A stretch of DNA of 64,000 bases. It comes from Takakia lepidozioides. Lineage: Eukaryota; Plantae; Bryophyta. The DNA lies in contig CM060731.1 of assembly GCA_030704615.1 (NCBI GenBank), positions 45,694,001 to 45,758,000 of the forward strand, read 5' to 3'. Under the pieces are notes generated by a model. The model was given only the letters and a program-made list of their open reading frames with translations. It made no database searches and was not told the DNA's origin. Positions within the stretch are counted from its first letter, which is position 1. Each line of letters begins with the position of its first letter. Shown piece by piece: positions 1-44,819 of the stretch. The position numbers were made by a program, and so were the translations under genes.

Positions 1-3000
1 CCATGAACAAACTCGGCCTCCAGCTTGAGAATGTCTTTGACAAGAGGTGGACGAACGACGGGCATGGAAACCAACCTACACAGGGGAATCTTCAACCTCC
101 CACCAGGAGCAAGCATACTTTGAACCACAAGCTGAGAGTTCACCTTTTGACCCCCCAGCATCTCAGTGGCTTTGCTTTCATAAAACTCATCGTCAACATC
201 AACTATGGTCTCCTTCCCCTGACCCTGAGGGACCTCATCCGCCACACTTTGCATTTTCGCCTGCAAGGTTGTTCACTCAAATTCTTATAAGAGAGGAATG
301 AAACGTCGACTGATGCATGAAAAGTGGGATCAAACAGGTAAGTGTTCTTTGAGCTGCCAGGTAAGTGTTCATTGATCCTCATGGACCTGCCCTATGTTCC
401 CGATTTTCACAGGGAAAGAACATTGAAAAGTTCTGCTCAAACAGTGTGCGTTGCCGCACACTTTTGAGCTGGCAGTAAAGGATTCATTTCATCCTCAGAT
501 ATGTGCCCATGAGGGCCGAAGGTTGCGCCCTTCAATATTGATATGTTCTGCCTAAACAGTGTGCGGTTCCGCAGACTGTTTGAGCTGACCGTGAAGAGTT
601 CATTTTATCCCCAGAAATATTACACTGAAGACCAAATTTTGCACCCTAAAACATTGAAATGTTCAGCTCAAACAGTGTGCGTTGCCGCACACTGTTTGGG
701 CTGACAGTGAAGGGTTCATTTCATCCTCACATAGGTGCCCCTGAAGTCCAAATTTTGCACCCAGAAACATTGAAATGTTCATCTCAAACAGTGTGCGTTG
801 CCGCACACTGTTTGGGCTGACAGTGAAGGGTTCATTTCATCCTCAAACAGGTGCCCCTGAAGTCCAAATTTTGCACCCAGAAACATTGAAATGTTCAGCT
901 CAAACAGTGTGCGTTGCCGCACACTTTCTGAGCTGGCAGTGAAGGGTTCATTTCACCCCCAGATAACAGACAGCAAGACCAAATTTTGCACCCTAAAACA
1001 TTGAAAAGATCTGCTCAAACAGTGTGCGTTGCCACACACTGTGTGAGCTGGTTGTGAAGGGTTCATTTCAACCTCAGATAACAGACAGCAAGACCAAATT
1101 TTGCACCTAAAACATTGAAATGTTCAGCTCAAACAGTGTGCGTTGCCGCACACTGTTTGGCTGACAGTGAAGGGTTCATTTCATCCTCACATAGGTGCCC
1201 CTGAAGTCCAAATTTTGCACCCTGAAACATTGAAATGTTCAGCTCAAACAGTGTGCGTTGCCGCACACTATTTGGGCTGACAGTGAAGGGTTCATTTCAT
1301 CCTATTATAGGTGCCCCTGAAGTCCAAATTTTGCACCCTGAAACATTGAAATGTTCAGCTCAAACAGTGTGCGTTGCCGCACACTGTCTGAGCTGGCAGT
1401 GAAGGGTTCATTTCACCCTAAGATAGGTGCCCCTGAAGTCCAAATTTTCCACCCTGAAACATTGAAATGTTCAGCTCAAACAGTGTGCGTTGCCGCACAC
1501 TGTCTGAGCTGGCAGTGAAGGGTTCATTCACCCTCAGATAACAGACAGCAAGACCAAATTTTGCACCCTAAAACATTGAAAAGATCTGCTCAAACAGTGT
1601 GCGTTGCCGCACACTGTTTGAGCTGGTTGTGAAGGGTTCATTTCAACCTCAGATAACATACCCTGAAGACCAAATTTTGCACCCTAAAACATTGAAATGT
1701 TCAGCTCAAACAGTGTGCGTTGCCGCACACTGTTTGGGCTGATAGTGAAGGGTTCATTTCATCCTCAAACAGGTCACCCTGAAGTCCAAATTTTGCACCC
1801 AGAAACATTGAAATGTTCAGCTCAAACAGTGTGCGTTGCCGCACACTGTCTGAGCTCGCAGTGAAGGGTTCATTTCACCCCCAGATAACAGACAGCAAGA
1901 CCAAATTTTGCACCCTAAAACATTGAAAAGATCTGCTCAAACAGTGTGCGTTGCCGCACACTGTGTGAGCTGGTTGTGAAGGGTTCATTTCAACCTCAGA
2001 TAACAGACAGCAAGACCAAATTTTGCACCCTAAAACATTGAAATGTTCAGCTCAAACAGTGTGCGTTGCCGCACACTGTTTTGGCTGACAGTGAAGGGTT
2101 CATTTCATCCTCACATAGGTGCCCCTGAAGTCCAAATTTTGCACCCTGAAACATTGAAATGTTCAGCTCAAACAGTGTGCGTTGCCGCACACTCTTTGGG
2201 CTGACAGTGAAGGGTTCATTTCATCCTATTATAGGTGCCCCTGAAGTCCAAATTTTGCACCCTGAAACATTGAAATGTTCAACTCAAACAGTGTGCGTTG
2301 CCGCACACTGTCTGAGCTGGCAGTGAAGGGTTATTTCACCCTAAGATAGGTGCCCCTGAAGTCCAAATTTTGCACCCTGAAACATTGAAATGTTCAGCTC
2401 AAACAGTGTGCGTTGCCGCACACTGTCTGAGCTGGCAGTGAAGGGTTCATTTCACCCTAAGATAGGTGCCCCTGAAGTCCAAATTTTGCACCGTGAAACA
2501 TTGAAATGTTCAGCTCAAACAGTGTGCGTTGCCGCACACTGTCTGAGCTGGCAGTGAAGGGTTCATTTCACCCTCAGATAACAGACAGCAAGACCAAATT
2601 TTGCACCCAGAAACATTGAAATGTTCAGCTCAAACAGTGTGCGTTGCCGCACACTGTTTGGGCTGACAGTGAAGGGTTCATTTCATCCTCAAACAGGTCA
2701 CCCTGAAGTCCAAATTTTGCACCCAGAAACATTGAAATGTTCAGCTCAAACAGTGTGCGTTGCCGCACACTGTTTGGGCTGACAGTGAAGGGTTCATTTC
2801 ATCCTCACATAGGTGCCCCTGAAGTCCAAATTTTGCACCCAGAAACATTGAAATGTTCAGCTCAAACAGTGTGCGTTGCCGCACACCTCTTGGGCTGACA
2901 GTGAAGGGTTCATTTCATCCTATTATAGGTGCCTCTGAAGTCCAAATTTTGCACCCTGAAACATTGAAATGTTCAGCTCAAACAGTGTGCGTTGCCGCAC

Positions 3001-3983
3001 ACTGTCTGAGCTGGCAGTGAAGGGTTCATTTCACCCTCAGATAACAGACAGCAAGACCAAATTTTGCACCCTAAAACATTGAAATGTTCAGCTCAAACAG
3101 TGTGCGTTGCCGCACACTGTTTGGGCTGACAGTGAAAGGTTCATTTCATCCTCACATAGGTGCCCCTGCAGTCCAAATTTTGCACCCTAAAACATTGAAA
3201 TGTTCAGCTCAAACAGTGTGCGTTGCCGCACACTGTTTGAGCTGGCAGTGCAGGGTTCATTCCATCCTCAGAAAGGTGCCCCTGAAGTCCAAATTTCGCA
3301 CCCTAAAACATTGAAATGTTCAGCTCAAACAGTGTGCGTTGCCGCACACTGTTTGGGCTGGCAGTGAAGGGTTCATTTCACCCGCAGATAACTGACTCCA
3401 AGGCCAAATTTTGCACCTTAAAACATTGAGAAGACTTGCTCAAACAGTGTGCGTTGCCGCACACTGTTTGAGTTGGAAGTGCGGGGTTCATTTCATCCTC
3501 AGAAAGGTGTCGTTGAAGGAAGAATTTTGCACCCTTAAACAGTGACTTGTGCAGCTCAAACAGTGTGCGGCAACGCACACTGTTTGAGCTGCCACTGAAT
3601 GGTTCTTTCTTTCTCAAATACCTGCCATTGAAAGCCGAATTCTTCACAAATGTGGGTCCTGTAGATTTTACCTTTTTCGTAGGTACTCGAGAAGACTCCC
3701 CAGTTGCCGGGGACCCTTTCCGCTTCGGGCTGCTCTCTTCGCCGACTATGTAGGTGAGCCTCTCCCCCTTCCTCTTTCCCGTGGTCAGATTCTTCGTGAG
3801 GCCAGTGTCAACATCTTCCTCCATGTCGTCTGTCTCTCCCTCAGACGCAGTGTCCTCCTCGCCTGTTCCTGGAACTATGTTGGGTTGTTGTTCTTCTCCA
3901 GATTCCTGCTCCTCCATCGCCACACTTTCCTGTATTCCCTCTTCTTCCTCCTTTTCCTCTTCCTCCACTCTTTCCATCCTCAT
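1..3983 (-). CDS. Spliced gene with an acidic N-terminal exon and a ParB/Srx-like domain start; accessory gene of the MULE-like element, runs off the left edge
   Basis: Exon 1 3983-3672 (MRMERVEEEE...RVPTKK) ends at AAG|GTAAAA (GT at 3671). Acceptor ccttgcAG at 261. A phase-0 join gives open exon 2 (260-1): AKMQSVADE...GRLKIPLCRLVSMPVVRPPLVKDILKLEAEFVHG, resembling the start of a ParB-like N-terminal domain. Exon 2 is absent from the supplied ORF track. Confidence 0.6.
421..3600. repeat. Tandem array of ~28 x 115-116 bp units, each with a 40-bp palindrome CAGCTCAAACAGTGTGCG-ttgc-CGCACACTGTTTGAGCTG
   Basis: Period measured directly (gttc at 661, 777, 893). Consensus 18-bp inverted arms with a 4-nt loop; many copies carry one or two substitutions in the right arm. 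Units are degenerate at both array ends. Confidence 0.97.
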
Positions 3984-4916
3984 TCTATATCTAGCTCTAT
4001 TCCTGTTTCTAGAACTCGTGAAGTATAATGACTTCCTTCTCTTTCTCCTCCGCTGGAAACAAGGGCTCCCCACGATGCCCCTGGAGCTCTCCAGTTTGAC
4101 GTTTGCAACAAGTCCTGGTATCGCATGTAACAAAAATAAAAATGGACGTTGTCAACCGTATTTGGATGCGGGTGTTGATATTGTGTGCGAACGGAATTCA
4201 TCCATTTTGGCGTCTTTGCATTACCCAGCTAATAAAGCGCCGAAGAAAAAGAACATCCGTTGCATGCATTTGCGATATATGTCAGATGTACTTCGCCGCC
4301 TGCCAATACATGGCGGCCTCCTTGCCTTCTTTCAAATTCGAATGTGCCGTAGAAATGTAGTGCTTTTTCAATTCCGAGCAGTTCTTCCAGATTCGCAATA
4401 ATTGTTATGCTTCACATATGCATCCACGTGTGTTGTACTGCATGCCCTGTGGTTTTTTTTATGCCGTGACCGTCCCCATGGGGTCATTCGGTATAAAGGA
4501 TTTTGTCGGATATGACCATGTGTTGCACACATTCGTGCGAGGTATCTCTTGGAGTGTCAGTGTTTGTTCTGTGCTATTCTGGCGCAACACAATCTCATTA
4601 CAATCGGATCTTCCTGTTTACTGCTCTCCAGGGTTGTTGCCGTCATTTCATAATGGATGGTTTCATGTCATTTTCAGGGTTTGTTTTCCATCCAAAAACA
4701 GCACGGCTTCTTGTGGCTCTGGTCTTTCAAAACGGTTTTTCTGGTTGGTGGGAGGTGAAGGTGCACGTCATCCCTACATCCTTGGCATGCATCGCCGGCA
4801 GCCTTTGGTTTGGTGCTACCCTTGTTGACCTCAGTTTGCTGGTGGTATTTCCACTTTCGATAATTACGGGCTCTCAGTTCGGGGATTCCGTTCTGAATCG
4901 CCAGTTTCGTTCAGTG

Positions 4917-7900
4917 ATGGAAAACATGTCGAGGGAGCGAGATGCACTCGCTCGATTCCATTCCAATGCAGGTACTCTTCCACTGACTGCCACTGCAGAC
5001 GACGATGGGTATGCAGTTGTTCATGAGGATGAGCTGGTTACAGTGTTCCCGCTGGAGTTGGGTTCTCTGCTTGTTCAGAAAGAGGTGTATGACGATGATG
5101 GGAATTTGGATTCTGGGCACTTGGAGAAACCCTTGGTTGGCGAGTGTGGAAGGAAGTGGAGAGTCCTTCCAGGAACATACCGTGTCCTTGGAAAAGAGAG
5201 AAGACAATCAGCAGGATCAGTCGTTACCCCTGGCACTGCAGCATCGGTCGTGCAACAGAAGGGCACAGTTCCTGTGAAACAAGAGGTGAGCACATCCACT
5301 ACCTTCGTGACTCTTTCGGACTCGTCCTCGGAGGATGTTTCTGAGATTCCTCCGCCAGTGCAAACTCCCTTATTGCATGATGACGAATTGCAAGAGATAA
5401 CAAGTGTCATTCCAAAATTGAAAGCCCTCGCAGGTGTGCCTGGGTGCAAGAGCGAGCTACGTTTTGTTGATTGGGAGTCCCTTCCAGTGCAACGGGTTCA
5501 ATACGTGCCAGCTCAGTTTGATGGGGACATCTTGTTTGAGCTCAACCCTCCCACGTCTTCCAGTGGACTGGCTGGGCTTCTGCAGGGCATGGACAAGAAA
5601 CATGACGGACATCCTTGGTGCAGGACAAAAACGTCGAACATCCATAACGACATTGGCTTGAAATTTCGGAGGTCGGTTTGCGTTGGGCATTGCAAGTGCC
5701 TGAATATTTCTTGGCCCTCGGCTGAGAAACAGCGCTCAGCCAAACGAAAGTGAGTGGGAAGGTGTGCCCCTGAATCCTTTCACCCCAGGGCTTGCACCTC
5801 CCAAGACCAATACTTTTGTGTGCAGGTTCTGCAAACTTTCCCCGTCCTGTGTTTCTGTTTGCCACGCTCGTATGTATCAGGTGGCACATCGATGCAAGAC
5901 AATGACTCGTGCCTGCATTCATATGGGTGCACACGAGCATCCTGTGTCCAAAGGGAGTTGCAGGGATAGCGTGGACATCGCTAGAAATCTACTGAAGCAA
6001 GAGTTCCACAATGCCCCTTGTGCAACACCTTCTGCTATAGCGCTTGCAGCTAGCAAGGCATTCCTGGAAAAACACATACTGGGTGAAGGGGATGCGATAC
6101 AGCCAATGCTGGATGCAGATTCCCTTGAGGCAGTCATGGACCATTTCTCCGTGTTGAGCTCTCCCAATATTCGAAACCAGGTGAATGCACTCAGAATGGG
6201 CACAGGCACTGCTGGATTCATGGACAACATTATGGACCTCAAACGGAGGAGTCGCTATGAATTCATTCAAAACAGTATGTTCCCTGGCCAGGGCTCGTCC
6301 AAAGTGTATTTGTTCAAGATGTCCGCTGTGGGCCAAGGCAGTGGTGTGAGCATTGTCCGCCGAATGCAACCTGGAGGAGATTTGGCTAAATGTTGGTTAA
6401 TGTTTGATCACTGCAAACGGGTGAAGGGTTGGACAACCATGGCGTGCCATGTGTATGATCCAGCGTACCAGCGTGTGCTCTCCATAGCAATTTGTGATAT
6501 GCAGTCGGAGGACACTGAATCCCAGATGCTCATGTGGAATTCCCTCCTGGCCGTCATGCAGCGCAATGGAATACAGAACACAAATTTTGCGGGCTTCATG
6601 GCTGATAGTGCACAGGCAAATTTCAATGCAGTGCGGCGCGTGTTTGGTTCGGGGGATCCTAGGGTCCCAATGGAAAATAGGGAGCGCACATGCCTCTTCC
6701 ATTGGAGTCAATCTCTGGCACGTCATACAAAGCGCTGCATTCGCCCTGACCTTCAGTTGGAGCATAGAAGGCTCTGTCTGAAGTACAAGAATGCCACCTC
6801 AATGGGAGAAGCTGAGAGCACTTACCAGGCAATCCGGGCTTGGTGGTTCTCCTCTGGTGCTGCTACAGGTATCCACCTGAAGGAGTTGGAGGACTGGTTG
6901 GTTTTCTGGCACTTCAGGTACAGACAGTGGGGAGCTTTCATGACGACGGTAAGCCTCACAAGTTTTCCTTAAACACAAATTGCACTTTGCATCGTGCCTG
7001 TTCATTTGGGGTTGTTCGATTGTCACTTGAAGAACCTCTACCATTTCTTTTCCTTCCTCACATTTCCATGCAATGCCTCCTGCAGGACATGTCCTTGGAG
7101 GACTTGGCCGACATGCCATCGTGTAATTTGGCAGAGACTGTTCACAACGCCTGGATGCAACAGTCTACCAAAGCAGGTCGTGACTTGTATGTGGCCACTG
7201 CTGATGACATGGTGCGGGCACTTACACAACAAACCAGGTACCGCAATTTTCTGATGGGACGGGGTGGAGGGAAGGGCCCCGATACGACTTTGTTGATGCT
7301 AAGGGCTGCGAGTAGGTCCGGAGACCCGTCAAAGATGGCCAGAGCTCTAAACAGGTGCACTGAAGGCTCCCCTCTGCAATCCAGGCTCCCCCATTTGGAA
7401 GGCGAGGAAAGATTTGGATCATGCAAAAGGAAATTAAACACTCTTCCAGGGTCAGATGGAGATTCCCATAGGCCAGACAGGGTCAATTTCTCTGTGCCAA
7501 AGGTGTCTCCAGTGCAGACTAAGTCCTGTGCCGGCCCCTTCCCAGGTGGGTCCTCCTCCTGTGGAGCAGGTGCAGAACATGCAAGCATAGCAGCGGAAAT
7601 CCCATTGGAGGAGGTGGTGGCCATGGTGCAGGAATCTGATTGCATTGATAGTGACTGGCATATAGAACGCACCCCACCGGGATCTAGAGTGGCTTGCATG
7701 GCAATTCGGACCCCCTCATTCAAGAAATGCAAATCAAAAATATGCAAAGGCTCCAGGGGGACTCCAGCTCCAACATTCACAGGGTTGTTCCGACCTTACC
7801 ATAGTGGGGAGTCAAAAGAGCACAAGTTTTGGTTCTGCCCAGACGATATGGCACGATGCGTGAAGGGAACAGTTCGTCCTTCCGTGATAATGAAGCCCCC

Positions 7901-8498
7901 TCCCCCCGCAATTTGGCCTGTGAAAATTGGGACATCGCTGTCCTCAACCGAGATAAGCATGCTGGAGGAGGGAGGGTTTTGTCTTGCACGGTCCCGGGTG
8001 GTGCCCTTATGCACTGTCGGCACAGATGTGCCACATGCTCCGACAATGCCTCCACCCGGTGCCGACTCCCACCCAACAAAAAGAGATGGAAAAACAGTGC
8101 GCCGTGTTGCTTCGGGTGCAGATCACGAATGCAAGATGGAATCGGCTAGAATTTTGCAGGCTAGGGTGACTCGTATCACCAAAGTCCCTTCCCCGGGGTA
8201 TGGACGGATTTACACAGTGCTGTCAATTGGCTCAGTTCTTCATGCCAAAGAATATCAGGTTACCATCGGGAATTTCCCATCGTGCACTTGTCCGGATTTT
8301 GTAACAATGCGTGAGGGCGCTCTCGGCATGAGAGGGAAGTGGGTCCCCTGCAAGCATCAATATTACATATACCTTGTAATTATGTGTTGCGACGGTAAGA
8401 GAGACCAATTCATTCACCAAGCCACACTAGGCTACGGAGAAGTCATCACCCTTCTGCAGCGGGACACCTCGCGTAGAGCTCCGCCAACTTCTCTTTGA
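4917..8498 (+). pseudogene. MULE-like DDE transposase with Cys/His-rich N-terminal region and C-terminal SWIM zinc finger (one frameshift near 5720)
   Basis: LMFDH (D1), FMADSAQA (D2), CLFH (CxxH), intron 6949-7085 (ACG|GTAAGC...TGCAG|GAC), NLAETVH (E), SWIM CTC...CKH in ORF 6840-8498. Confidence 0.8.
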
Positions 8499-8899
8499 AC
8501 ACATACGAGCCATGCCCGCTTCCCATGCTGGTTTCCAGGTTGCCGTGTGAAGACTTTTCATTTTATGACAAACATATACATTTCGTTCACGGAACCAGGG
8601 CAAATGCACTTGCGATTCATTGTAAGCGTCTCTCTGTGAATTGAAATAAACTGTGTCAATCATTCTGAGCTCAAATCTGCCATATTTACATATTCCTCTT
8701 TTTTGGCACGCATTGCAGACATGGTGCATGGTGGCCTCCTTTGTTTTGTCCACGGTAATAGGCCCTCTTCCTGCAATCCTCGCCTATAGGACCTGCTTCT
8801 CCAGCAGATTCATGCCGCTCACGCTTCCCTGAAGCGTGAGCTCAGCTCACGCTTCAAAGCTTCAACGTGAGCTCAGCTCCCAGGCTCACGGGGCTGGGC

Positions 8900-11354
8900 T
8901 CACGCCGTAGCTACGCTGCTATAGACATTGTCTATAGTAGTTGTGGCAATGTTCTGCACCTGCAGCCTGAGCTCATTCATCTCGCCCTGGGTGAGCTTCC
9001 GTGGTGCTTTGCCTTCCACCGGCCTTTGTGCTAACCAGACTTGCATAAGGTGGTTATCCACCAAGTTGCGTGTGGCACCCCTTAGAGTTTGCTCCTCTGT
9101 GAGTCTGTACACATCTATCTGCTGCTGTAAAGCTTCCATGCGCTTTGCATGAGGTTCAACCAAACTCGCATAGGCAGCAGCCAGATTATTGGCCTCCTTC
9201 CAAGCCTTGTTAGCCACAGAGTTCATTTCTATTGGCCATGAGCGTTTGTTGCAATTCCAGGATGTACCTCTCTTGGGTAGCTTCAACCTGCCTGTATTGC
9301 TTGAAAGTATTTTCATTGCGACAGATTGTATTCTTCATATCAATAATGAGTTTTGTCTGCTCGACATTATCTGTCTGTGCCTTTATACATCTTTCCGCTT
9401 GGTTGTTAACTTCTTTTGTAGTTTGCTCAAGCGTAGTTATGAGTGTAGCACATTGTATGGCCATCCTGTCATGCACTATCTGCAACTCCGTATGTAGTGC
9501 ATTTACTTCTTGCAACTTGCTCTCATGTTTCACCTGCATTTGGTATAGCTGTTGCTTATGTGCTTCGTGCAACTGGTCCTGCGCGAGGCCTGCTTCAATC
9601 AAATGTTCCTTGGCCATCTGCAAAGCAGCTGTTGTATCTTCTAACTCTTGCTGTAACTTGAGAGTGACCTCCTTATCAACCTTGTTTGCACACTCAGTGG
9701 CAAGTCGAGCCTCAAACTCCTTCCTGAGTTCCTCCCTCAAAGCTGCCAATTGGGTAGATGGAACATGGGATTTCACATAAGTGCCCAACAAATTAAGTGT
9801 CCTGCTTATGGAACTCATAAGCATGGCCTGTTGAGGGTCCTCATGGTGAGTTTGCTGCTGTTCTCCCTGATCCTCAACAGTGTGATGCCTCACGAACCAT
9901 TCGAGCCATTGCCCTACCAGATTTTCTTCCTGAACCACCTCATCCACCACAGGTGCTGCAGTGTCTTGACATTCTCCCCCTTGTACCTCCATCACAGGTG
10001 TGGTTATTACATGCACAATAGGGTTTCCCCTGGACACTCGCTGCACCTCTGGAATCATTGTTTCCCTTATCAAGCCAGAATTTTCATAGAGAATGTCACC
10101 CTTCTCAATTTCGGCCACGACCTGCTCTGTAGTGGGAATGTCTAATCTTTCTCCTTCTTGAGCAATTGGGGGTGATGTCACAGCATATACTAACTGTGGA
10201 ACCTCTAAAACAACAGAGTCAATTGGTTGTGGTGGCTGTGACATCGAAGTGACTTCCTCCTCCCTCTCTGAAGGCCCTGCTTCCAATAATAGCAGCTCTC
10301 TGTGCTGCTGTGCCCCTTCCTGCACAAGAGCTTGGGAAACATTATCATGCGGTTTCCGTGAAGCCAGTGGATCCGCCACTACAGTCTTTCCCCGCCTCTG
10401 TCTCTTAGACTGGGGTTGCACTGCCAGTCCACCCTCACTGTGTAAAGAGCCTTGCTCTTCAATTGCAGTGGTTTCTGTTTCAAACACTTCCATCTCCTTT
10501 CTCTCCCGAGTATCAAGTATGCAAGAATCAAGAATTATTTGAGCAATGATTGGACTGGACACAATGATGGGAGACTTAGCAATAGTGCCCTGTAACCTCT
10601 TCATCTCGTCCACCAATCCGTTGTACATTAACTCCGCCCAAACGACATCCTCTTCCCTTAAAGCTTTCAGGATCTCCTCTGTGAAGGACTTGCTCAAATA
10701 TTGTTGGTTCTGTTTCATGGCAAACAGAACGTTCAAGATTTGGCCAACCTCCCTAAGCCCTGGGTACTCGGCTTTGTTACAAGCAAAACCTTGAGTTTTA
10801 AAGAAACTCCCCTCTTGGAACAAATTCCCTATCTGCAATCTTGCCCTGTGCTCATCCACCTCCACATGTCCTGATGGCAAATCAAACAGTTGCTGCAGGT
10901 ACTAAGGAGTAATTTCTATATCTACTCCCCTCACCTGAGTAACTCCTGTCCGAGGCTCAAAGTTTTGGAGAAATTGTATCATGAACTGCCGATGATGCAA
11001 GTACCAGTCTTTGCGTAGCAATCCCTCCAATCACAGCTCCTTCAGTAGCTGCACCGCCTGTGGTACAGCGATCGTTTGCTTCTGTAAGATTGTGGTGCTT
11101 TTCACCTTGATATCTTCCATTCCTCTCACTCTCTTCATTCTGGACAAACAGACAGGTTTTGGTTGCAACAACTGAAGAAACGCCTGCAGGGCACAAAGCA
11201 TAAAAGTGTAGTTGGCGCAGAATGAAATGGGTAAGCGCTTGTAAGCCTGCGGGGCTTGCAAGTAGCGATTTAGAGAAAATGTACTCTCCGTTCGTCTGTC
11301 CTTATGCCACTGCGTAAGTAGTAAGGCGAGCGTGTAGTCTGTTATTTCCGCCAT
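8900..11354 (-). pseudogene. Extra ORF downstream of pol (plant-transposon-protein-like N-terminus, acidic linker, long coiled coil)
   Basis: ORFs 11031-11354, 9210-10880 and 8900-9316 join through stops/frameshift: ...LEGLL...QFLQNF...VRGVDIEITP*YLQQLFDLP... followed by a heptad-rich C-terminus. Confidence 0.6.
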
Positions 11355-11860
11355 AGCTTCAAAGTTATAGCTTTGATTGTCTCTCCTGACAAGACGCCCG
11401 TTACTTGGAACGACGCCGACTCTTGCGCTCAGAATCCCTCCATTTTCTTGATTTCGCTTCTTGGAAATTACCCTCTGCAGCTCATGATTGGCTGTTGGTT
11501 GTGTGATTTGTTTTGTAATTTAATTTCCTTCCATGGATTTTCCACTCTGGACTGTCCACTAGGATAGCACATGTGACATGGATTTCGCTTTTCGGTACTT
11601 TTAAAGGGTTCCGTTACCCTTTCCCTGTATGCATTAATGGGCCCATAATAAGTTAATGTGCCTTGTAGGTACTTTGACGGCCAATTTTGTCTTCTTCCTT
11701 GATAACAGTCACTCTTGCAATCCATGTCCGGCTGTGTGTCTCGCCCTGGCATCCACGTGTCCATTTCTAAACGTGCCTCCGTCCACTTTTCCGCCGTCCA
11801 CTCTTCGGATGTTAACCCACGTCCACCTGTCACTGATCCTATGGATTGTGTAACCCCAGT

Positions 11861-12165: not shown

Positions 12166-12199
12166 TGTACTGCCCGCCCTGGTCATATATGCTTGGCCT

Positions 12200-24800: not shown

Positions 24801-24874
24801 GGCATTGGGAAGAATGATAGAGATGAATTGAGCTCTGCCTTGGAACCACATCTCTTCTTTTTGAATTAGGGCAG

Positions 24875-32848: not shown

Positions 32849-33566
32849 GAAGTTAGTAACCTCCACTGGGCAGTGGAGGTTCAATAAAATCCTATTACAG
32901 GACGGAAGATTAACTGAAGGAAAGAACGTCGTGACACCGAAAGGAGAAACTTTAAGTATAACTTTCTCGACGGTTCTGAATGAGAAAAACAATATGGTGT
33001 CAAAAAGTAAAGTCAATGTTTGGATGTACACTGGGACTGATGAAAAACAATTGGAATTAAATTGGAGTATGAGGGTGGAGTATAGACTACATCTATCTGA
33101 ACTGTCAGATGAAGTCACAAATGCCAACCTCCACTGGACAGTGGAGGTTGGATGATATCTGTTGATGAAATCAACCACATGGATGAACAATCGATAATGA
33201 AAAAGCCCTCTGTAGATGAAAAATTGATTCTATGGATGGATGAATATTAATGTGGCGACTGCCCAGTGGAGGTTTGGGAGTAACTTTAGACAAACAAAAG
33301 CAAGTTTAGCTGGTGCACATGGAGAGTACACAAAAAAATGAGTATCATACTATCCTACGTGAGAAATGTGCAGTTGACACATGAGACTAAGGAAGCAGGG
33401 AGAGACTCAGAGGCTGCTTCAGAAGTACCCTATGGGCAGAGTGGTGCAGGACAGGCAAAGAGGTACACGTTGTCCAGAGAGGTGCAGGATGTCCAGAAAG
33501 GTGCGTGAGAGAAAAGTAGCAAGCGAGAGGTTCACAGTGGGAAGTTGTGCTGTGTGGAGTCGGACG

Positions 33567-33574
33567 TTATATAG
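33567..33574 (-). promoter_or_regulatory. Candidate TATA box of the Sola-like transposase
   Basis: CTATATAA on the minus strand followed by a CT-rich leader, upstream of the transposase ATG at 32848. Confidence 0.4.
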
Positions 33575-36055
33575 AGGTGACATGTAACTTTCATCTTTGA
33601 ATCACTCCAATGGTAGTGTGGTATGCTTTCTCTCCCGGATCGATTGTGGCCACCGTGGATTAAGGCAGAATCGAACGGCTTATTTCAACTCGCGAAATCA
33701 TGGCTTCATTGAAAGTGTGCACAATTTTCCATTTATTGACAGCAGCCATTGTCACATTAATTATGGAACAAATGATAATGGCCGCGATCAGACTGAATTC
33801 TATCGTACTTGTACGTTAGTAGGACTACATGTCTGGCATCATTATCGTGCGGCTCTGACAGCAGACTCTGGAATAAGCGTGAATGATGTCGATTCTGACA
33901 AGTGGTCTGGAGAAATGAAGTCAGGCGGCTAATCGCCACAACTAATTCTGGACTGCCGTGCCTTGTCGTGCTCTGCTGTGCCTTGCTTTCTTGCACATGT
34001 TTAATGTAGGGATGGACCCCTCGTGTCGGGTATCCCTCGATAAATGGACAGACCTTAAATCGAGGAATGCCCGACACGGGGGGCCATCTACTATCCTTAA
34101 AGCCGTATGTCACATGGCACTTGCGGGTGTTGTCAGGGAATATTGACGCCTGGCGGCCAACAGCCGAAAATGATTATGGACGGCTCATAATGAGAGAATG
34201 ATTATAGAGTGTGAGGAATCCGTAGGTACAGCGCTGTGTCCACTAGCAGATTGAGTTTGAAACGACTGCCTAGGCGTGTCACGTGGGTGGTCACATGGGC
34301 GTTTGGGGCGTGGGTTAAGGTTTGGCGGCTTGGAATCTATTTTAAGATTTTTGTAAGCGTGAGGGTTGCAAAGTCTGACCAATGGCGTCATTACAGTCAT
34401 TTCGTTCTTTTTTCACTCGTCTGTCCGGTCGTCTGTCCAAAAGTGTGTGCATTCGTCATTCAATTTGGAACAAAAATTGAACTAATTTCATCTGTGTGGA
34501 TGGACAGTATTAATGTTAGTTTGCGTGGATGTGGCAGAACATCCATTTGGGCCGCGCAACCATTCGATTTCGGACGGAGGCGATGGTTCAGATCATTCTT
34601 GAAGGTTGCTTATAAGGGGTGCGCTCTTTGAGCCCGACCTTTGGGCTTCCTATTTTAGACGCGTAAGCGCTGCGCGAGTGAGAGCTTGACTGTTGAGAGA
34701 GGAGAGAGTGAAAGGGAAGAGTTTTGGAGCGCGGAGAGAAAGAGATTGTACACTGGAGCGTGGAGAGAAAGAGAGCAAATTTGGCTGAGTGCAGAGAGAG
34801 CAAAGGGTGAAAGGTGAGAGAGTGAAAGAGGTGAAATTTGAAGAACGGGGAGGAGAGACAGGACAGTGGCAAGTGGAGATTGACGAGTGCAGAGACGAGA
34901 GCACAGTGCAATTACCGGCAGGCGGAGGTGCGGAAGAGAGTATCAAACGAAGGACTGTTGTTGTAGGGGCACCAAAATGGCCGGCACAAGCAGGTACAAC
35001 ATTGAAAACTCCCTCTTTTCGTCTTATGTTTCATGTTTTGTCTTGGCTTATTCTCAATTCGTATGGCCTGCTCTCGATTCATGTGGCCTGTTCTTGATTC
35101 AATTCGTTTGGGATCCTGCTTCATTCTATGTTGCACTGCACTGTCTTCAGTGCACTCTCACTTGAACTTCAGTGCTTCAGTCCGTGCTTCGGTGCACATT
35201 AGGTTTCTGTTTCATTGTCTGCTTTGTTGTTTGCTTCATTCTTCATTCTCTGTCAATTCATTTCACTCCTGCTCCATTCTGTGCTTCAGTGCACTCCTGC
35301 TTCATTGCTTCAGTGTTGTTGTTCAATTCACTGATGGTTTGTAGGGTGGTTTTGTGTGGTGGTTTTGTGTGCAATAGGGTAATGTGTGTGCTTGTTCTGG
35401 TCGATTAGGGTAATGGTTTAGGGTGGCGGGAGATTACCGTGCTGGTTGTATTGCTTGTTTTGTTCAATGTGGTGGTTTTTTTAGGACAGTGGTTTCGAAA
35501 ATGTCCGGTTGTTTATTTCTCAACAGTTTTCTTGATCCCCAAATCCAGCGTTAGTTTGTTCTTGTCAATAGTTTATGTCTTTCTTCCCATTCAAATTCAA
35601 TTCTGAATGGCAATTTTCATTTCATATCCAATTTTGTCGAATTCGGCAATTATGAAAAACCACGATAGCCTAGTCTACTTGTATTCTACAGTAGACATAG
35701 GCTAACAGTAGGCTTCGTGCAGGCCAAAGTAGACTATTCGTAGACCAATGTCATACACATGAGGAACCAAAAACTGGAACGTCCACTGCCCAGTGGAGGT
35801 TCGCGAGAATTCTGTATGGGGAAGCTGAAAGACATTTTTTAACATTACGACGAAATCGGATAATTCCGGGAAAAATGAAAATCAGTGTGAGAAGATGTGG
35901 GAACGAGTGATGGAATCATATGTGTAACATTGTAAGTGTGACACATACTTTCCAACGAGACTGGGATACGATAATTGGGAACCTCCACTACCCAGTGGAG
36001 GTTCGATATTTCTTTGGGTCAGCCAGTTACACACTCTGATTAGTTTTTATGTCAG

Positions 36056-36710
36056 TATTAGAAAGAGGAGCGAGGGTGGGGAACCGGTGTCTGACGAAGA
36101 GTACAAGACCGTCAGCTTAAATTGGAGCAAGAGACGATGTTCGGTAGACGTGATAGAAGCGGACCATCCAGATCAAAAATTTGGTGTTTCGGAACCAAAT
36201 GAAAAATCCAGTTGGGGGTCTACCGAGCCGAACAAAATGTCTGTGATTGACAAAAATGTAACTGTAGAATCCCCGTGGAATGCATCCGAATCTCCCAACA
36301 ATACAGCAGAAGACATCTCCAAGGATACCCTGGCGGAAATAAGAGAAAGCGTTCATGTAAACAATGATGTCAACGGATCTCCTGCCTACTCCCAAGATTA
36401 TCCGACGTACACTCCTCCAGACTATTCCCCGGACACATTGGCGGCGATACGAGTGACCGTTTTTGGATATCCCGCATCTCCGGGTTACTCGACAGTATCT
36501 CCTGAATCCACAACAGGATCTGCAGGATATTACCCTCCATCCTTCTCCCTGGACACTGCAACGAGACAGGGAGTCCTGGAACTCCTGGACGTCTCCGGAT
36601 CTCCAAGATACTCCCCTGTGTCTCCTGATAGTATCACCGGATCCCCAAAATATACCCCTCCAGACTATTCGCTTGATACACTCAGAGAGATCAGAAGGAA
36701 CATTTTGTAG
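36056..36710 (+). CDS. Low-complexity ORF/exon with Y-S-P repeats resembling RNA Pol II CTD heptads
   Basis: Acceptor-like tgtcAG at 36055. SPAYSQ, YTPPDYSP, SPGYSTVSP, SPRYSPVSP and SPKYTPP occur in three larger repeats. Confidence 0.5.
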
Positions 36711-37032
36711 TTCTTGGGTATATAATCTAGAATCGTCTGAATATAGTGCGGAAAGTCCCTGAGTATTTATTGGACAAATTAGGTTCGAAGATTTCTTTTG
36801 TAGATTTGCCCTGTTTCAGGATGATGTACTCAATGGCTCCTGAGCCTCATTTTCATTAAAGTTTTTTTCTACAACATCTCTAATATATGGAGGATTTTCC
36901 ATTTCATGTAGAAAGCCTCATACATACGAACCTCCACTGTCCAGTGGAGGTTCTTATTTCTGGAATGATGGATGCTAGTAAGAGAGATCTTGTTATTTTA
37001 TTATCTAATGAATTTGTGTTTGGTTGTAACAG

Positions 37033-40000
37033 AAGACATCCTACACCACCAGATTGCGTCCCGGGATTGATTGGAGATATTTGTGGCGCATTCGTATGCC
37101 GGAAGTCCTCACATTTCAAAACTGAGCATACCGCAATTTTTGAGCTTAACCCAGAGGTGACAGATTGGGGAATCGTGCCTGTCGGTACACCTCCTGATCA
37201 CAAACTGTCTTTTCATTACAGAAGTCATGGAGTAATAACAGACTTAAAATACGTGGAAGCTCTCGATATAGAGCTTGAATCTGAAGAGGAAAACCCGATG
37301 ATTGGTTTTGTTCCTGCATGAGGATGCGAGAACCCCTAGGACGTTTGGTTTCAAAGTGGAGGTGGGTCGTCTGAACAAGTCCTTGATAAGTGAATGCATT
37401 GCAATGGGTTTTAGATTTCCAGACGAGGGCTCAATATTTACCGACGTAGGTTTGTCGAGGGCCTGGAGTATTTTTCTGGATCTTCTGCACGCAATGGGGA
37501 ATGACATTCGTAAGAAACGAGCACTAGAGGAAGCATCAAAGCCGAAGAGGGGAAAACGCAAGTCATCGACAGCCGGCAATGATGACAATGAGGCCGGGAC
37601 TTCCGCAGGAAAGAAGAAACAGAAGGAGGATCAGGATCCAGCATTGATGTCAGATAACAAGAGACCTAAAGCTGGGGAGTTCTTCGACAAAGAAAAATGC
37701 GAGAAGATGGAGGAGAGGCTCACGAAGGAATATGATGACGTATTTCCATTCGGATTCGAGAGTACCTTCCTTGTGAAGGTTTCCATGATGGAACTAGCTC
37801 CAATGAGCATGGTTTACAGGCCGTCAAATATCAAGCATAAGGACGAAGTGAAAGCGCGATTATTCCAACTTCATTTGTTCGACTCCAAACATCCGGTGTA
37901 TCTTGCACCAATCAATCCTTCCAATCCCGAGAAGATTACTTCATCGCGACCAAAGCAATGGAAGGAAATGGACGTATCCAGGTTCTTCGTCATTGGTGGA
38001 CAACACACCATCGTTGCAACAAAGGTAATGGACTTCACTTCCACCCAGACCTCTCTTTTAATGAACCTCCACTGGGCAGTGGAGGTTGGTGATCCCACGA
38101 AATTGGATATGTCCCTACCCTTTCAACTCTCTCATCCATTTTACATTAACTGTAGCAGGAACTTCTCGAGGATCTTGCCGATAGCGAACTGAAGGAGTAC
38201 TACCGGGAGTGGCCTGCGAAGATTGTATGGTCTACCGATGAACAAAGGCTCTTGAAGTTGTCAAAGCTCCTCAACGATCCCAATAAGGCGCAAAAGTTTG
38301 ATACAACAATGCCGGAGAAAGTTGCGCATGCGCGAATGTTATTCAATCTGAGGGGGAAGCCAAAGAAATACAACGATCACACCACCAAGTCCGAGACGAA
38401 ACAATGGAAGGTATGCATTTATGGAATGAAAATCTACTATTCACATTCATTTTATGCTAAATAATACTTCTGTCGTCGGAGTGACACCTAATTTTTCCGT
38501 GGATGAAAGTGCAGGAGTTCATGTTTGCCTGTCATTTGATACTTGAAATGGGTAGCATTTAGGAGGCAATGGTCCTGGTACTTTGCGACGACGACGTTTG
38601 GAAGATCTGGGAAGATGTTTTCAAAATCTGGGAGCGGGGAAAGCTACTCGACCCGCTTGGGATACAGTACAAGGGTGATCAGCAACAGCTCACGAAATCT
38701 GCTATTGCAAAGTTGCAAGGGTTGAACACATGGTAGCTGATAAAAGTTGCGTAGAAAATCCTGGACCTGAAATTGACCATTCAAGATTACAAAGGACAAA
38801 ACAAATCAATTCAAGGCATGAACAAAGTACATAGACGACATGAAAATGCGTCGGTTTATTGTCGACGATGTTATGGAAGTGTTGGGGTGGCGTCGGAGGA
38901 GCAAATAGTGCGCGGAACCATACACTAAGGACGAGTGGCGTGAAGTGAAGAAAAAATACCACTTCAACAAGGCAGAGTTCTCAACATTTAAAGACAAATT
39001 GGGGACGGATTACATCCAAAGCAAGATCAAGATGAACATGGAGACAAAACCACTCACGGCCGCTTTTGTTAAGTACATCTCCTCCATCAAGAAAGCTTAT
39101 GAGGATAGAGAGGATGCCATGGCGATTATTTCAGTGAGTTTCAAAACTCATTACGCTCTTATGGGGGGGGAAACAAAATTCACCGATGCCAAGTCCCGTC
39201 TGCGATTCGCACCGAAGAAACGGTTTGACAACATAGCGATGGTGTTCGTCAATACAATTTCTGAAGATGACTCTGTGGTATTTGAGTCCAAGGATTATGT
39301 GAACATACTGGAGGCTTTTTGTGGCTCAAAAAATGAACACAAGTGCTTTTGTTTTCTTCTCGATGCAACCGTCCTCGGCCAATCTGGTCTCCTACATCCA
39401 AAATGGTCCCGGAAGAACATCGTATCTTGTCCGGCAGGGATTTTATATTCCGGGGGAGTATGAAAATGTTTACAAAAACAGAATGAAGACTTTCTCTCGG
39501 ACTGTACTGTGCCTGGACTATGTTTTTCCAGTGACACCTGAGGAGATGCAGAATCCGGACGAGCACATCGCCACCGTACTCTTAATCGAGCCAATACAGC
39601 CGATTCTGGAAGGGCCTTTTGAGAAGCCATCAGCTTTTGAAGAAGAGTGCAGGACTTATAATCATGAGCTACGAGTTGACACATACGACTATTTGGCCTC
39701 CCTGTTTTGTCGAGATGGGATGTCAGCTGTCAACATCTTCGGAGGCGTGATGTTGACGTACGCCCTTCATGTAAGTGTAAAATCTTTTTGCATTTTAAAT
39801 ATGAATTTTACATTTTTGATCGAACACGTCCTCGGTTTTACTGACTGGGTTTATCTGCAGGCAAGAAACATTCGAGTGCTTGACATCAATCACTCAACCA
39901 AAAAAAAATTTTGCAAAGAAAAAGTTGAAGCGAATTTTAAGAAGCTTCAAATTGAGAATGACAATGTTGCTGAAGAGGTTGACGGCGGAGACAATGATGA

Positions 40001-40353
40001 GGATGAGGAGGAGGAAGATGAAGACTTGGAAGAAGGAGGCGGACATTCCAAACACGGAGAGGAGGACGAGGGCATCGATGGTAACGAGGACCTATAACGA
40101 GGGCCACGATAAAGACAATGCAGACCGTTGGGAGGCTGGACACCTAGATGTGATTCAGGACTTCAAAACTCAGACACAGGATGGTCTTGAGAACATCACG
40201 CAAGACGTTGCGATCCACAAGGTCGTGATTCTGGATGGGGATTCGTTGAGTTCAAGCGAGAGAACTAAGAGTAATCCTGCTTCACCCTCAAGGGGTGCGG
40301 AGGCGAGCTCAATCGAGGTGGGCGGCAATATTGTTGGGAGTGCAGAAGACTAG
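37033..40353 (+). pseudogene. Multi-exon gene: ParB/Srx-like domain, degenerate DNA-methyltransferase-like region, acidic tail
   Basis: FLVKVSMMELAP...YRP...HPVYL...FFVIGGQHTIVATK. Introns e.g. 38025-38158, ~38411-38514, ~39771-39860. ELRVDTYDYLASLFCRDGMSAVNIFGG...ARNIRVLDI. Several frameshifts. Confidence 0.6.
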
Positions 40354-41127
40354 TTCAAACCTGTAGAAGGGGACGAGCCGGCGCCAATGTCCCCGTCTCC
40401 CGCAAAAGAGAGGGTAGAGAGAGCGAGGACAAAGAGCCCGTGTCCCACAAAAGATAGCGGACACAGAGCAAGGACTAAGAGTCCGTCTCCCGCAAAACGG
40501 GACAGTGGTGACAGAGCCAGGACTAAAAGCCCGTCTTCCGGAAAAAACAGCGGAGGCAGAGGCCGAACTCAGAGCCCAACTTACTCTCAAAGTGTCTCCC
40601 AGCATGTCAATTTGGATGTAGGTAACGAATGACACCTGGAGATTTATGTATTATAAATGGAACAAATTGTGTGGGTATTGCATATGGTTGTGTTCTGGTT
40701 GTATTTTTGCCAATATCTAATCTGTATCTTGATATTTCCCATCTTCTTCAACATTACATGTGACTGACGGTTACGAAAACTCGTATAGATCCATGAACGG
40801 AAATTGGAGGAAATCACACAAACCCGGACATAATCCATCGCGACTCAAACAGTGAGGAGGCAGGTGGACTTAACAATAAGGGTCAGCCCACCTGATCCGG
40901 TCATACAAACAACCTCCACTGCCCAGTCGACTTTGCGAGATGGAGGAGATGAGTCGGATACGGTTGTTGCTCAGCGCGAAGGAAAAGAGTGCAAGCAGCC
41001 ACAACAGCAAATTCGGAATCCCTCCCCGAAACGGGTACACACTTCATAACCATCTTAGCTATGTTCTTCTTTTTCCTTCTTCTAGTTTTCATAATAAATT
41101 AATTGTTTTGTTATTCCACAGGATGAT

Positions 41128-42327
41128 ATGATTCACCCTCCAATCGACTATCACAAATCTGTGAACCCACAAGATTGGTATCGCCTCTCTGAGGGACCGA
41201 AAGGATCTCGACCAGGATACTACGTCTTGGTTCTTGACGTCGGTTACCTTGGTGAGGTTTACATCCGAGATGGCCCGAGATCCCCTCCTGCAACCCATCC
41301 TTGTGTGTGCGCTGGAAAATTCAAGCTTGCAGTCCGAAATGGGTTGGACGACTTCCTGAAATGGGTCCTTAAGCATTTTAAGAACACTGGACCGTTAGAA
41401 AATGTCCTGGATATAGAGTTGGCTTTGTTTGGAAGAAGGTTTTATAAGGTGAGGGAATTCAGCAATGAGAACTGCGTGAAGCATAGACAGACTTTTAGTG
41501 ACGAATGGCCCAAATATCCGAGAGCGCCAATATATCTTAAACGTCTCTACGACCTTTTCACTGTAGACGACACTGTAGCGTACAAATCAAACACACTTCT
41601 TATCGACACTGTAGAAAATATGTATAAGTCCTACTTGAACCCAAAGTCGATGGGTATCTTCCTCCCAAAATATAAAGCGCTCGTCGACCCATACAAGGAC
41701 AAGTTTCTTTTGGATGAACTCAAACCGCACCTGGAAGAGTTGCGGTTATCTAGAAAAGACGCTGATATATTCAACGTGGAAAAACCCATAGGATGTCGAC
41801 CGTATAATGACTCAAAGGTCAAATGCCTTGACCTTGTAAGTTCGTTTCTGCAGGTTCATGGAGATGCTGCTGATGCCAACTTCTTGTCGGGACCTCCATT
41901 GGAATCCTCCATACCAGAAACTCGTCGACATAGGGACAACATTCACACTACTGTTGAGATTTCTGTCATCGACGGTGAAGCATCATCCAGGCACTTGGCT
42001 TCCCTTCAATTGCACGACCCTCTTCTTCAGTCCATTCCTGAAAATGATGTTCTGTCACATGATTGTTTAGGATTGAATGTCGAAGATGGAAGCCAACTTG
42101 ACAAATGTGCAGGGGATTTTGTGGACCTCACTCTACAATCCTCACCCTCCATGTCAAGTGTCAAGGGTCTGAAATCTACCTCGAGAATGTCATTCATTGA
42201 GGACGCGACTGAGGCTGCGGCTCCGCAGCACACTGTTGCTTCTCTTCCCTCCTTCTCTCCCCAGCACGAAGGTTGGACAACCCGAATCAGAAGGAGTCAG
42301 GTAAAATTACTTATATCTGAATTCTAA
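41128..42327 (+). CDS. Degenerate NIF/FCP1-like HAD phosphatase domain protein (copy 1)
   Basis: VLVLDVGYL...VRNGLDDFLKWVLKHF...NTLLIDT...KSYLNP...IF. Confidence 0.55.
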   Translation: MIHPPIDYHKSVNPQDWYRLSEGPKGSRPGYYVLVLDVGYLGEVYIRDGPRSPPATHPCVCAGKFKLAVRNGLDDFLKWVLKHFKNTGPLENVLDIELALFGRRFYKVREFSNENCVKHRQTFSDEWPKYPRAPIYLKRLYDLFTVDDTVAYKSNTLLIDTVENMYKSYLNPKSMGIFLPKYKALVDPYKDKFLLDELKPHLEELRLSRKDADIFNVEKPIGCRPYNDSKVKCLDLVSSFLQVHGDAADANFLSGPPLESSIPETRRHRDNIHTTVEISVIDGEASSRHLASLQLHDPLLQSIPENDVLSHDCLGLNVEDGSQLDKCAGDFVDLTLQSSPSMSSVKGLKSTSRMSFIEDATEAAAPQHTVASLPSFSPQHEGWTTRIRRSQVKLLISEF

Positions 42328-43169
42328 CTCATCCTTTTGTTTTCCTTACTGCTGGGTCTGATGTTCTTGTTTGATTCCAGGCCAGAAAATCTGTGGATTG
42401 TGACATTCCTGTCAAACGACGTCTTCATTGGAAATCTGTTCCGAGGTAATCCCTTCGTTACGTGTGAATTCCATTCAAGATGTGGAGTGCTCAAGGAACA
42501 ATTTCCATTCCGTTCCCCTTCTCCGCAACCCTTTCGACGAGGACAAGGACGAAACTTCAATTGCAACTTCTCGGCTTCCCGACCCTGCAGTGTTGGCGCA
42601 ATGTTCTGCACCGAGGAAGCGGAATAGGGCCCCCAAACCATTTCCATCTCTTCTACAAATCGGTTCCACCGGAGAGAAGCTCTTTGTCAGAGACAAAGCA
42701 GACTCGAGGATGAAAATGAATACCTCGGACATACCGGGGTCTCGTCAAAACACGTCCGTTGGGATGCCAACCCCGCCAGCAAGACTTTCCAATAAGGCGA
42801 CATCGGTACTATTCGATATCATTTCTCCACTTTCTTCTCTTTTCTGTTCGTTTGGTTATGCACTAATTAACTCCATCTTTTCTCAACAGGCGGAATACCT
42901 TCATCAATTTCCCTCCATACAAGGTACTTTCTTGAACCTTCACTTGGCAGTCGACGTTCCTCTTCTTAGCAATATTAACCCTCCTCTTGAAACATTCCAA
43001 GCCCACAACATTGTGCAGGATTTTACCATTTTCTGCACAATCGTCTTGATCTTCCATATACTCAATCATTCTAGGTCATGGGTATTTTCATGGCAGAAAC
43101 ACTAATGTCAGTGTGTGATTAACCTGCTCAGGATAACTTTGTCTCTCATCCTTTACATGCAACAGCGGG

Positions 43170-43900
43170 GAAGAGGAAATGGATGTTGTTAATTTTGAGT
43201 ATCAACGGACTCTTCTGCTACCGGCCACCGGAGGTGAACTGTTTAAGGAGAAATTTCGTTTCAGGAATGTGACATTTCAAGTTCCTAACAGACCGTTTGT
43301 GGTGCCTCGGCCTGGAGTCTTGGAGTTTCTGGACCTTGCATTGAAGCATTTTCACGTGGCCATTTGGTCATGTGCTGATAGAGGTGTTCTTTGTAGGATG
43401 TTGGAGAGCTTCGTCCCTACGAAAATGTCGAAGAAGTTTTGCTTCATATGGTCTGCTGAGGATTGTAAGGATACCACCGGTTATATCAGGCTCGGGATGA
43501 AATATCTCGTGAAGGATATTCGAAGTATTATTGTCAGGTACCCTGGTAGACCGTTTGCTACGTAGGGGCAAATACTTCTTGTAGATGATGACCCATCAAA
43601 AGGCCTGCGAAACCCACAAAATACTGGATTCTTCCCTTTCTCATTCAAGCCTTCACCAAACGGATTGCATGACCGGGATGATATGACAAAATCGGTGTGG
43701 CCATATATATCGGAGATGGCTGGAGCTTCAACAATCGTTGATTACATTAGTGAGAACCGGGCAAAGTGTTCTCATAAGCCTATTGGTCGAGACCATGCCT
43801 GCTGGGCCTGGTATGGAAGAAATCTAGATCCTCGTGTTTGGATCCCACAACAAAAGGAACTTGATTACCTTGTTAGGCACGTGGATCCCACTATTCTGTT
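43170..43900 (+). pseudogene. NIF/FCP1-like HAD phosphatase domain (copy 2), catalytic Asp replaced
   Basis: LLILSINGLFCYR (alternative frame from ~43183), VPRPGVLEFL...FHVAIWS, FIWSAEDC, VKDI, ILLVDDDPSKGLRNP. One frameshift and one stop. Confidence 0.75.
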
Positions 43901-44819
43901 GTTTGTTCATAATTTGATTTTTCAATTCTTTTGCATTTGCATTTACCTCAACAAATCCATATGCAAAACTTCCACTTTGGGCCTAACTTTTGTCATTTCA
44001 ATCGCTTGTCCCCAGTTACATTCAAGGAACAAATTCTAAAAGAGGAACAAGAGCTGCGTGATTGAGAAGAATGGCAGGCGTGCCGGGAGGCTTCAAGGGC
44101 ATCAAGTAGAGTTGGCAGTAACATTTTCAGATGATAATGTCAGCCGGTTTCACCTTCCTGAAAGTATCTCCGTGTCCTCTGGTGCGGAGATCGTTGCAAG
44201 TGGCTGTGGTAACCGATGGCGTCTTCGGACACATGCCTTGACTGCAAGCTGTTTGGGAGGAGGCTCAGTATTATTAATGAGTTAGTATAAGCCGTAACGG
44301 TTCTATGGCTTCAGAATCTATGGCTGGTATGGCATTAAGTCCATGAACGGATGGACAGTTGATGTTCATTTTTCTGTTGGTCCATCGCCTTGAATGATAT
44401 AATCTCAAATAAAATATGAATGTTTCATATCATCAATCAGGTCCCGACAGACTCGTTTTTCCATGTTGTCATCTTCATCACATGCCATCATTGTTTCATA
44501 TTTGGTTCTGCCATTGTTCCATGTTTGTTTGTGTATGTCATTTTGGATATCGGAGCTCTCATCATTGTTTGATTCATTGCATCCTCCCATTCCTTTTAAT
44601 GAACGTCAACTTGGCAGTGGATGTTCATCTAAGACCACAATACATACTTGTATTTTTGCGTAGAATGTGTGGAGGATTATATAATTCGTTGTTATATAAT
44701 ACACAAATAGTCAAATAATTGTAGATATATATCTTTATTTCTATTATAGATTATAATTATTCATACATCTTGTATTATTTCTGGACCAAACAAAAGTCCA
44801 AAATTAGTTAAAATAGAGT

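Follow-up and report, generated by a model that had tools for sequence, protein, structure and literature searches.

Divergent accessory genes with a ParB-like domain and family-specific palindromes in two unrelated DNA transposons of the moss Takakia lepidozioides: a candidate self-recognition cassette

Introduction

The means by which large DNA transposons escape silencing are known for few cases, such as VANC in Arabidopsis. VANC is not known to be ParB-like, and its motifs are short. They are non-coding, often tandem and family-specific, and are bound by VANC (PMC5735166). In the red alga Bostrychia, Plavaka elements carry the accessory genes PAG2 and PAG3. A ParB-like accessory protein is encoded there beside tandem inverted-repeat arrays, and the proposal is that it binds the transposon from which it comes and modifies it; the accessory genes of this alga move between transposon families (10.1101/2025.02.11.637652). 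The large Sola element Sola1-1_Ec32 of Ectocarpus has an opposite-strand gene for a ParB-like and N4/N6-methyltransferase protein, which the authors suggest binds and modifies its own element (PMC12477816). The domain order ParB plus amino-methyltransferase is also common in phages, and the arginine of the ParB P motif is needed for nucleoside triphosphate binding (10.1101/2025.10.10.680097). Here we describe a stretch of 64,000 nucleotides from the moss Takakia lepidozioides (assembly GCA_030704615.1, contig CM060731.1, positions 45,694,001 to 45,758,000; the whole stretch is called the window). It holds two DNA transposons, each with an accessory gene divergent from its transposase gene and with many copies of its own palindrome. 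An earlier model-made interpretation of the letters (the sequence-only reading) had proposed that both accessory genes encode ParB-like proteins that load on these palindromes.

Results

Layout of the two elements and their palindromes

Element 1, of Mutator type, occupies 1–8.7 kb of the window and element 2, of Sola type, 28–44.8 kb; their transposases are unrelated. In each the accessory gene lies head-to-head with the transposase gene, an arrangement that the sequence-only reading had noticed and that the layout of open reading frames (ORFs) bears out. Its palindrome counts, 28 copies of 40 bp and 12 copies of 24 bp, were exact, and its statement that almost all of them lie outside coding exons agrees with the predicted gene models of both elements.

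The 28 palindromes of element 1 (433–3591) are not dispersed. They lie within one predicted accessory-gene intron, one in each unit of a single 116-bp tandem array (419–3620, 27.7 units). Because all are units of one array, the 28 copies represent one amplification and not 28 events. Array columns are variable at 4 of 40 palindrome positions versus 25 of 76 spacer positions (p 0.007, with units that are not independent). In the last palindrome of the array (3552–3591) the centre is inverted compared with that of the remaining 27.

The 12 palindromes of element 2 (29333–44625, at most six mismatches) are dispersed, and their flanks are unrelated to each other. Eight are within three mismatches, against 0.00 expected from 100 shuffles. 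The first lies 3′ of the transposase gene (29333–29356), the second in a predicted transposase intron (31437–31460) and three more 5′ of the transposase (32858–33274, starting at 32858, 33126 and 33251). A further three are in the 5′ non-coding region of the accessory gene (35778–36952, starting at 35778, 35980 and 36929), and one is in the intron within the ParB-like domain (38064–38087). Two fall in other predicted introns (40911–40934 and 42935–42958), and the last lies 3′ of the accessory gene (44602–44625). None of the 12 is in a modelled exon, with the model covering 56% of the element (P about 5e-5); this exon model was built on homology and splice sites, and no RNA run was found to cover element 2. 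The half-sites of element 2 showed no compensated changes versus 24 broken pairs, with two recurrent positions that tolerate C or G. Since the half-sites vary independently and no change is compensated, the site looks more like a protein-binding site than an RNA stem. Neither palindrome occurs in the remainder of the window, nor in any of 17 further locus regions with which the window was compared.

Co-occurrence in relatives

Transposase relatives were found in moss- and peat-type metagenomes and in the liverwort Riccia. Seven independent relatives of the Mutator transposase were fetched. All seven have a homologous divergent accessory gene, about 2–7 kb upstream of the transposase, and six have a palindrome family of their own (3–16 copies), mostly in accessory-gene introns and in some cases 3′ of the transposase. 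No comparable palindrome family occurred in 30 shuffles or in the host DNA of the window. In a scan of metagenomes, too, the transposase matches that lie upstream of the accessory gene had the opposite orientation to it (L028/29, L035, L036 and L055/56).

A cross-matrix of palindromes against elements was nearly diagonal, each family being almost private to its own element. The Mutator-type palindromes share an inner core, CG(G/T)-NN-(A/C)CG, with outer arms that diverge. TGCG is common to element 1 and its sister L001, and TCGG to the other Mutator elements.

The arrangement is also present in Sola-type relatives. A Sola element of Riccia sorocarpa (L064) carries 22 copies of its own palindrome and a divergent gene with methyltransferase-like and NIF regions. 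The order of parts is that of element 2, and the gene is homologous to that of element 2 in the helical and NIF regions. A third gene of the element 2 type (L011) is accompanied by 12 palindromes; its transposase lies outside the fetched DNA. Because the layout recurs with an unrelated transposase in element 2 and Riccia, what these elements have in common is the accessory gene. This gene, divergent and by its gene models spliced, is accompanied in each family by a two-fold symmetric site of that family's own, copies of which lie in introns and spacers. The co-occurrence of transposase, accessory gene and palindrome that the sequence-only reading had anticipated is thus found in independent relatives, Riccia among them.

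A protein kinase gene was seen just 3′ of the Riccia Sola transposase (L064:15693–17501). At three loci (L010, L058 and L060) a Sola-type transposase lies 3–7 kb downstream of the Mutator-type one on the opposite strand, as in the window, possibly through mutual targeting. A compound Mutator-plus-Sola element was considered for these loci and the window and was not adopted: the distance between the two parts is not constant and each has a palindrome to itself, and nesting in transposon-rich regions is for these reasons preferred as simpler.

Domains of the accessory proteins

Searches with Pfam, PHROG and PDB sequences gave no ParB match for either accessory family; recognition as ParB comes through the fold only. 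Folds and searches were done exon by exon. In element 1 the accessory gene is on the minus strand. An upstream acidic/basic exon (3672–4133) matches L001 weakly (E 0.02) and has an uncertain 5′ limit. It is followed by a predicted phase-0 GT-AG intron of about 3.4 kb (261–3671), which holds the array, and by the exon with the start of the ParB/Srx-fold domain (1–260). In L001, too, palindromes lie immediately upstream of the ParB exon. Exon 1–260 runs off the window, with only 86 codons inside it, and shares 63% identity with L001 across 60 residues. The fold of the element 1 family was read on L001, the closest relative.

The AlphaFold model of the L001 domain has a mean confidence (pLDDT) of 83. 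Its structure matches include PadC (Z 8.2, rmsd 2.4, 94 residues), KorB (Z 8.1), sulfiredoxin (Srx; Z 7.0), SerK, SbnI and Spo0J, and the top 14 VIA matches are nearly all proteins of the ParB/Srx superfamily. In Foldseek the top match was ParB (probability 1.00, E 0.034) and the top rows were ParB with E above 0.001; the top matches of an Atlas search were likewise ParB. The modelled structure thus supports a ParB/Srx fold for the element 1 family; the Z values are moderate, and what carries the assignment is that the matches are almost all of one kind. The GxxR of the P motif is kept in this family, as DGNHR in intact-looking relatives; that part of element 1's own gene lies beyond the window. 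The ParB domain of the Mutator family is under purifying selection, with ratios of non-synonymous to synonymous substitution (dN/dS) of 0.10–0.23 in three pairs and 0.41 in a fourth.

The accessory gene of element 2, on the plus strand, begins its conserved part with a domain at 37647–38410 (exons 37647–38024 and 38159–38410) that has GGQHT in place of a P motif with arginine. A word-indexed homologue search with this exon gave no match; an index-free search gave 19 relatives. Over 101 columns the domain can be aligned collinearly to the element 1 family (P 0.003–0.007, above all 100 block shuffles, HH probability 5%), and the leads from a protein language model (Atlas) were DUF6551, DUF3723 and ParB_N. 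No fold match was obtained with a truncated single-exon model of low confidence (pLDDT 65). From these comparisons the domain is likely to be ParB-like. The proposal that both accessory proteins contain ParB/Srx sequence therefore stands well for the element 1 family and less well for element 2, which lacks both a fold match and the arginine of GxxR.

Downstream of the ParB domain, the Mutator relatives encode a helical region and then a segment whose motifs are ordered as in beta-class amino-methyltransferases. DIPE or DVPE replaces DPPY, motif I is altered in most copies, and matches to hidden Markov models (HMMs) are weak (E 0.045–0.4). The corresponding region of element 2 (38513–39770) is helical and then methyltransferase-like; it is degenerate, with stops at 38560, 38734 and 38752 and frame breaks, and its domain identity was inferred from L011 and the Riccia element. 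The window's piece and the Mutator-type pieces match HMMs weakly or not at all. The Riccia homologue matches PF01555 (N6_N4_Mtase) at E 9e-4, which falls short of the curated cut-off, and also M.RsrI at E 0.0011. The catalytic motif IV, (D/N/S)PP(Y/F), is absent in all copies read. Further downstream in element 2 are two NIF/FCP1-like domains (41122–43870, with a stop at 43563), which match PF03031 at E 1e-3 and 7.6e-6 and both lack the catalytic motif DxDx(T/V). The accessory gene thus combines a ParB/Srx-fold domain, a probable one in the Sola type, with a helical region and a putative, altered beta-class amino-methyltransferase fold, to which the Sola type adds NIF-like domains. The methyltransferase-like and NIF-like domains are a part of the gene that the sequence-only reading had overlooked.

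A 207-codon ORF of element 2 (36087–36710) encodes heptad-like Tyr-Ser/Thr-Pro repeats that recall the tail (C-terminal domain, CTD) of RNA polymerase II and has no Pfam match; it sits upstream of the gene with the CTD-phosphatase-like domains. A repeated segment rich in Ser-Pro and Arg within the accessory gene (40354–40629) derives from a 45-bp repeat.

Transposases and element ends

Both transposases, like the element 2 accessory gene, are damaged in the window. That of element 1 (4908–8498, plus strand) has D, D, CxxH and E motifs and a SWIM-like finger, with a frameshift near 5713 and an intron at 6949–7085. No MULE Pfam match was obtained, and the Mutator assignment was made on motifs by eye and a weak SWIM match (E 0.085). 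The extent of 1–8.8 kb given earlier for element 1 needs correction: the right end is lost, the relic of a long terminal repeat (LTR) retroelement abuts at about 8.7 kb, and the left end lies beyond the window. The element 2 transposase (29509–32734, minus strand) matches DUF7869 (E 7e-39), which we take to be the Sola-type transposase, and its D-D-E motifs are visible. It has an in-frame stop at 31165–31167, further frame breaks and a predicted intron at 31413–31560. No terminal inverted repeats were found between 26.7–29.4 kb and 43.9–45.6 kb; the ends may be decayed or outside these ranges. Repeats of 210 bp with telomere-like TTAGGG runs lie near the left end (28528–29135). Contigs of one run with the same organism label (1983 contigs) pile up on element 2 at 85–99% identity, a sign of a multi-copy family.

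Other features of the window

The stretch at 8.7–28 kb belongs to neither element. Pentatricopeptide repeat (PPR) genes occur in the last 20 kb, and the window is plant nuclear DNA. Next to element 1 is a decayed Gypsy-type LTR retroelement (8700–24500, minus strand) with reverse transcriptase and protease matches and no detected LTR pair; an extra 556-codon ORF within it (9210–10880) has no Pfam match. Repeats with a 10-bp unit occur at 11860–12160 and 24260–24452. The pol region of the retroelement is interrupted by a 4.7-kb CACTA-type insertion (13967–18672) with 30-bp terminal repeats beginning CACTA and a 3-bp duplication, AAC. This insertion carries fragments resembling PPR-like genes found further along the window. 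LINE-like ORF1 remnants with a zinc-knuckle-like motif follow at 24875–26713 (minus strand), and a host gene region is duplicated (50301–51872 and 59337–60955, 89–94% identical).

Discussion

We propose that each transposon family carries a self-recognition cassette, a reading to which we give a probability of about 0.5. The accessory protein is probably what binds the palindromes; it would do so as a dimer, each half-site taking one subunit. Where GxxR is kept, in the Mutator type, nucleotide binding may turn the protein into a closed clamp able to spread over the element. On the motifs present, this clamp step is plausible for the Mutator type only. Members of the element 2 family that reach the P motif have GQH and then T, S, I or M, and because the arginine is lacking a canonical CTPase is unlikely there. 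More speculatively, the methyltransferase-like and phosphatase-like domains, lacking their catalytic motifs, could be readers, decoys or recruiters, and in these roles might hold the chromatin of the element open and allow transcription of its transposase, in the way VANC acts for VANDAL. By that analogy the purpose may be anti-silencing or self-activation, for which we judge the odds slightly below even. The fullest version is a tentative one that we regard as doubtful: a widespread, transposase-independent cassette of seed-free land plants in which a nucleotide-gated ParB clamp would load at family-specific palindromes, spread on chromatin, carry pseudo-methyltransferase and CTD-phosphatase-like domains, and shield the element from silencing.

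Several observations weigh against this proposal. The P motif of the element 2 family, as described, lacks its arginine, and the Riccia copy has no ParB exon, which was apparently deleted. No helix-turn-helix (HTH) or other known DNA-reading domain was found by sequence after the ParB domain; a conserved helical segment is present there. One Mutator element (L060) and old copies from peat samples have no clear palindrome family, and in two others (L001 and L059) palindrome clusters lie just 3′ of the transposase and are possibly subterminal. The expectation that palindrome and ParB-like gene would co-vary was not borne out: among seven elements, palindrome distance correlated with neither ParB distance nor transposase distance (Mantel p 0.81 and 0.45). 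No ParA ATPase was found among the scanned ORFs of both elements or in annotated relatives. With no ParA and no detectable HTH, the cassette appears from its gene content not to be ParABS, and the suggestion that it serves segregation loses its footing.

The accessory protein might bind the palindromes for a mechanical or autoregulatory job. It could bridge sites and so compact an element of 11–20 kb, aid the pairing of ends, hold the excised element, or repress the divergent promoter as KorB does. The element 2 sites, spaced every 1–3 kb across the whole element, agree with such a role, as do the presence of KorB among the top fold matches and the loss of catalytic motifs from the enzymatic domains. 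It leaves the retention of methyltransferase-like and CTD-phosphatase-like domains unexplained, however, and no ParA or partner ATPase is seen in the elements; we consider it unlikely.

The same protein could instead be catalytically active on DNA, as an amino-methyltransferase that deposits 4mC or 6mA at the palindromes or in their surroundings, marks the element as self and blocks host 5mC. Ectocarpus Sola1 is predicted to encode such an enzyme, Marchantia has active 4mC writers, and the Mutator-type palindromes share a CpG-rich core. The sub-threshold N6_N4_Mtase match and the M.RsrI match of the Riccia homologue point the same way. The absence of (D/N/S)PP(Y/F) in every copy read, with DIPE or DVPE in its place, the mostly altered motif I and the weak Mutator-type HMM matches make this improbable.

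Of similarly low probability is the explanation that the palindromes serve as sites for the transposase or as repeats of subterminal type, comparable to those of Spm TnpA or Mutator ends, and that the ParB-type gene is carried as cargo and does something else. The L001 and L059 clusters located 3′ of the transposase would fit, transposases themselves can activate cognate copies (10.64898/2026.08.24.746577), and the co-variation test cannot tell the accessory protein from the transposase. Most palindromes, however, lie in accessory-gene introns distant from the ends, and two unrelated transposase superfamilies are found with the same layout.

That the palindromes are neutral by-products of tandem amplification or self-templated repair, or RNA hairpins affecting splicing, is very improbable: the element 1 copies are indeed a single array, within which intra-strand repair could conserve palindromes, but the copies in element 2, L001, L011 and Riccia are dispersed with unrelated flanks, the pattern recurs in many families with different sequences, and the hairpin reading was rejected for want of compensatory changes.

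The cassette supplies many natural protein–site pairs with sharply defined candidate sites, and relatives occur in transformable liverworts; the self-binding hypothesis put forward for algae in 2025 is therefore directly testable. It also raises the question whether a bacterial-type sliding clamp works on plant chromatin. If the proposal is true, this would be the first ParB clamp shown acting in a eukaryotic nucleus, with a natural set of orthogonal protein–site pairs and possibly a tool for sequence-specific epigenome editing.

Bacterial ParB, KorB and Noc resemble the cassette in the ParB/Srx fold, in GxxR (Mutator type) and in palindromic sites. It differs from bacterial ParABS in having no ParA and no detectable HTH, in its spliced genes and, in the Sola type, in the missing P-motif arginine. 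No sequence-level relatives were found among PHROGs or viral contigs. The VANDAL/VANC system is similar in combining a Mutator-type element, an accessory protein and family-specific non-coding motifs that evolve through tandem repeats (PMC5735166). The function of VANC is proven. The accessory proteins described here gave no VANC-type Pfam match, and their candidate sites are palindromes of 20–40 bp.

As for novelty in plants, which the sequence-only reading had claimed, we found no description of such a cassette in land plants, in a literature search that left out most subscription papers; the architecture and the self-binding hypothesis are already published for transposons of red and brown algae. 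The Bostrychia Plavaka elements, compared by the architecture in the published text, similarly have a ParB-like accessory gene adjoining inverted-repeat arrays. They differ in their EnSpm/Plavaka transposase, in the fusion of ParB to a 2OG oxygenase and in a methylase encoded by a separate gene with a SET domain. Sola1-1_Ec32 of the brown alga Ectocarpus is, like element 2, a Sola element with an opposite-strand gene of ParB-like and methyltransferase type. The likeness is one of architecture. Its published description mentions no palindromes and, in the passage compared, no NIF domains, whereas the elements described here have palindromes and NIF-like domains, belong to land plants, include Mutator elements and have degenerate catalytic motifs. 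The window and its relatives extend the algal precedent to land plants and to two transposon superfamilies that lie next to each other. They also add sites that are specific to each family yet built on a common core, as well as NIF-like domains and the degeneration of catalytic motifs.

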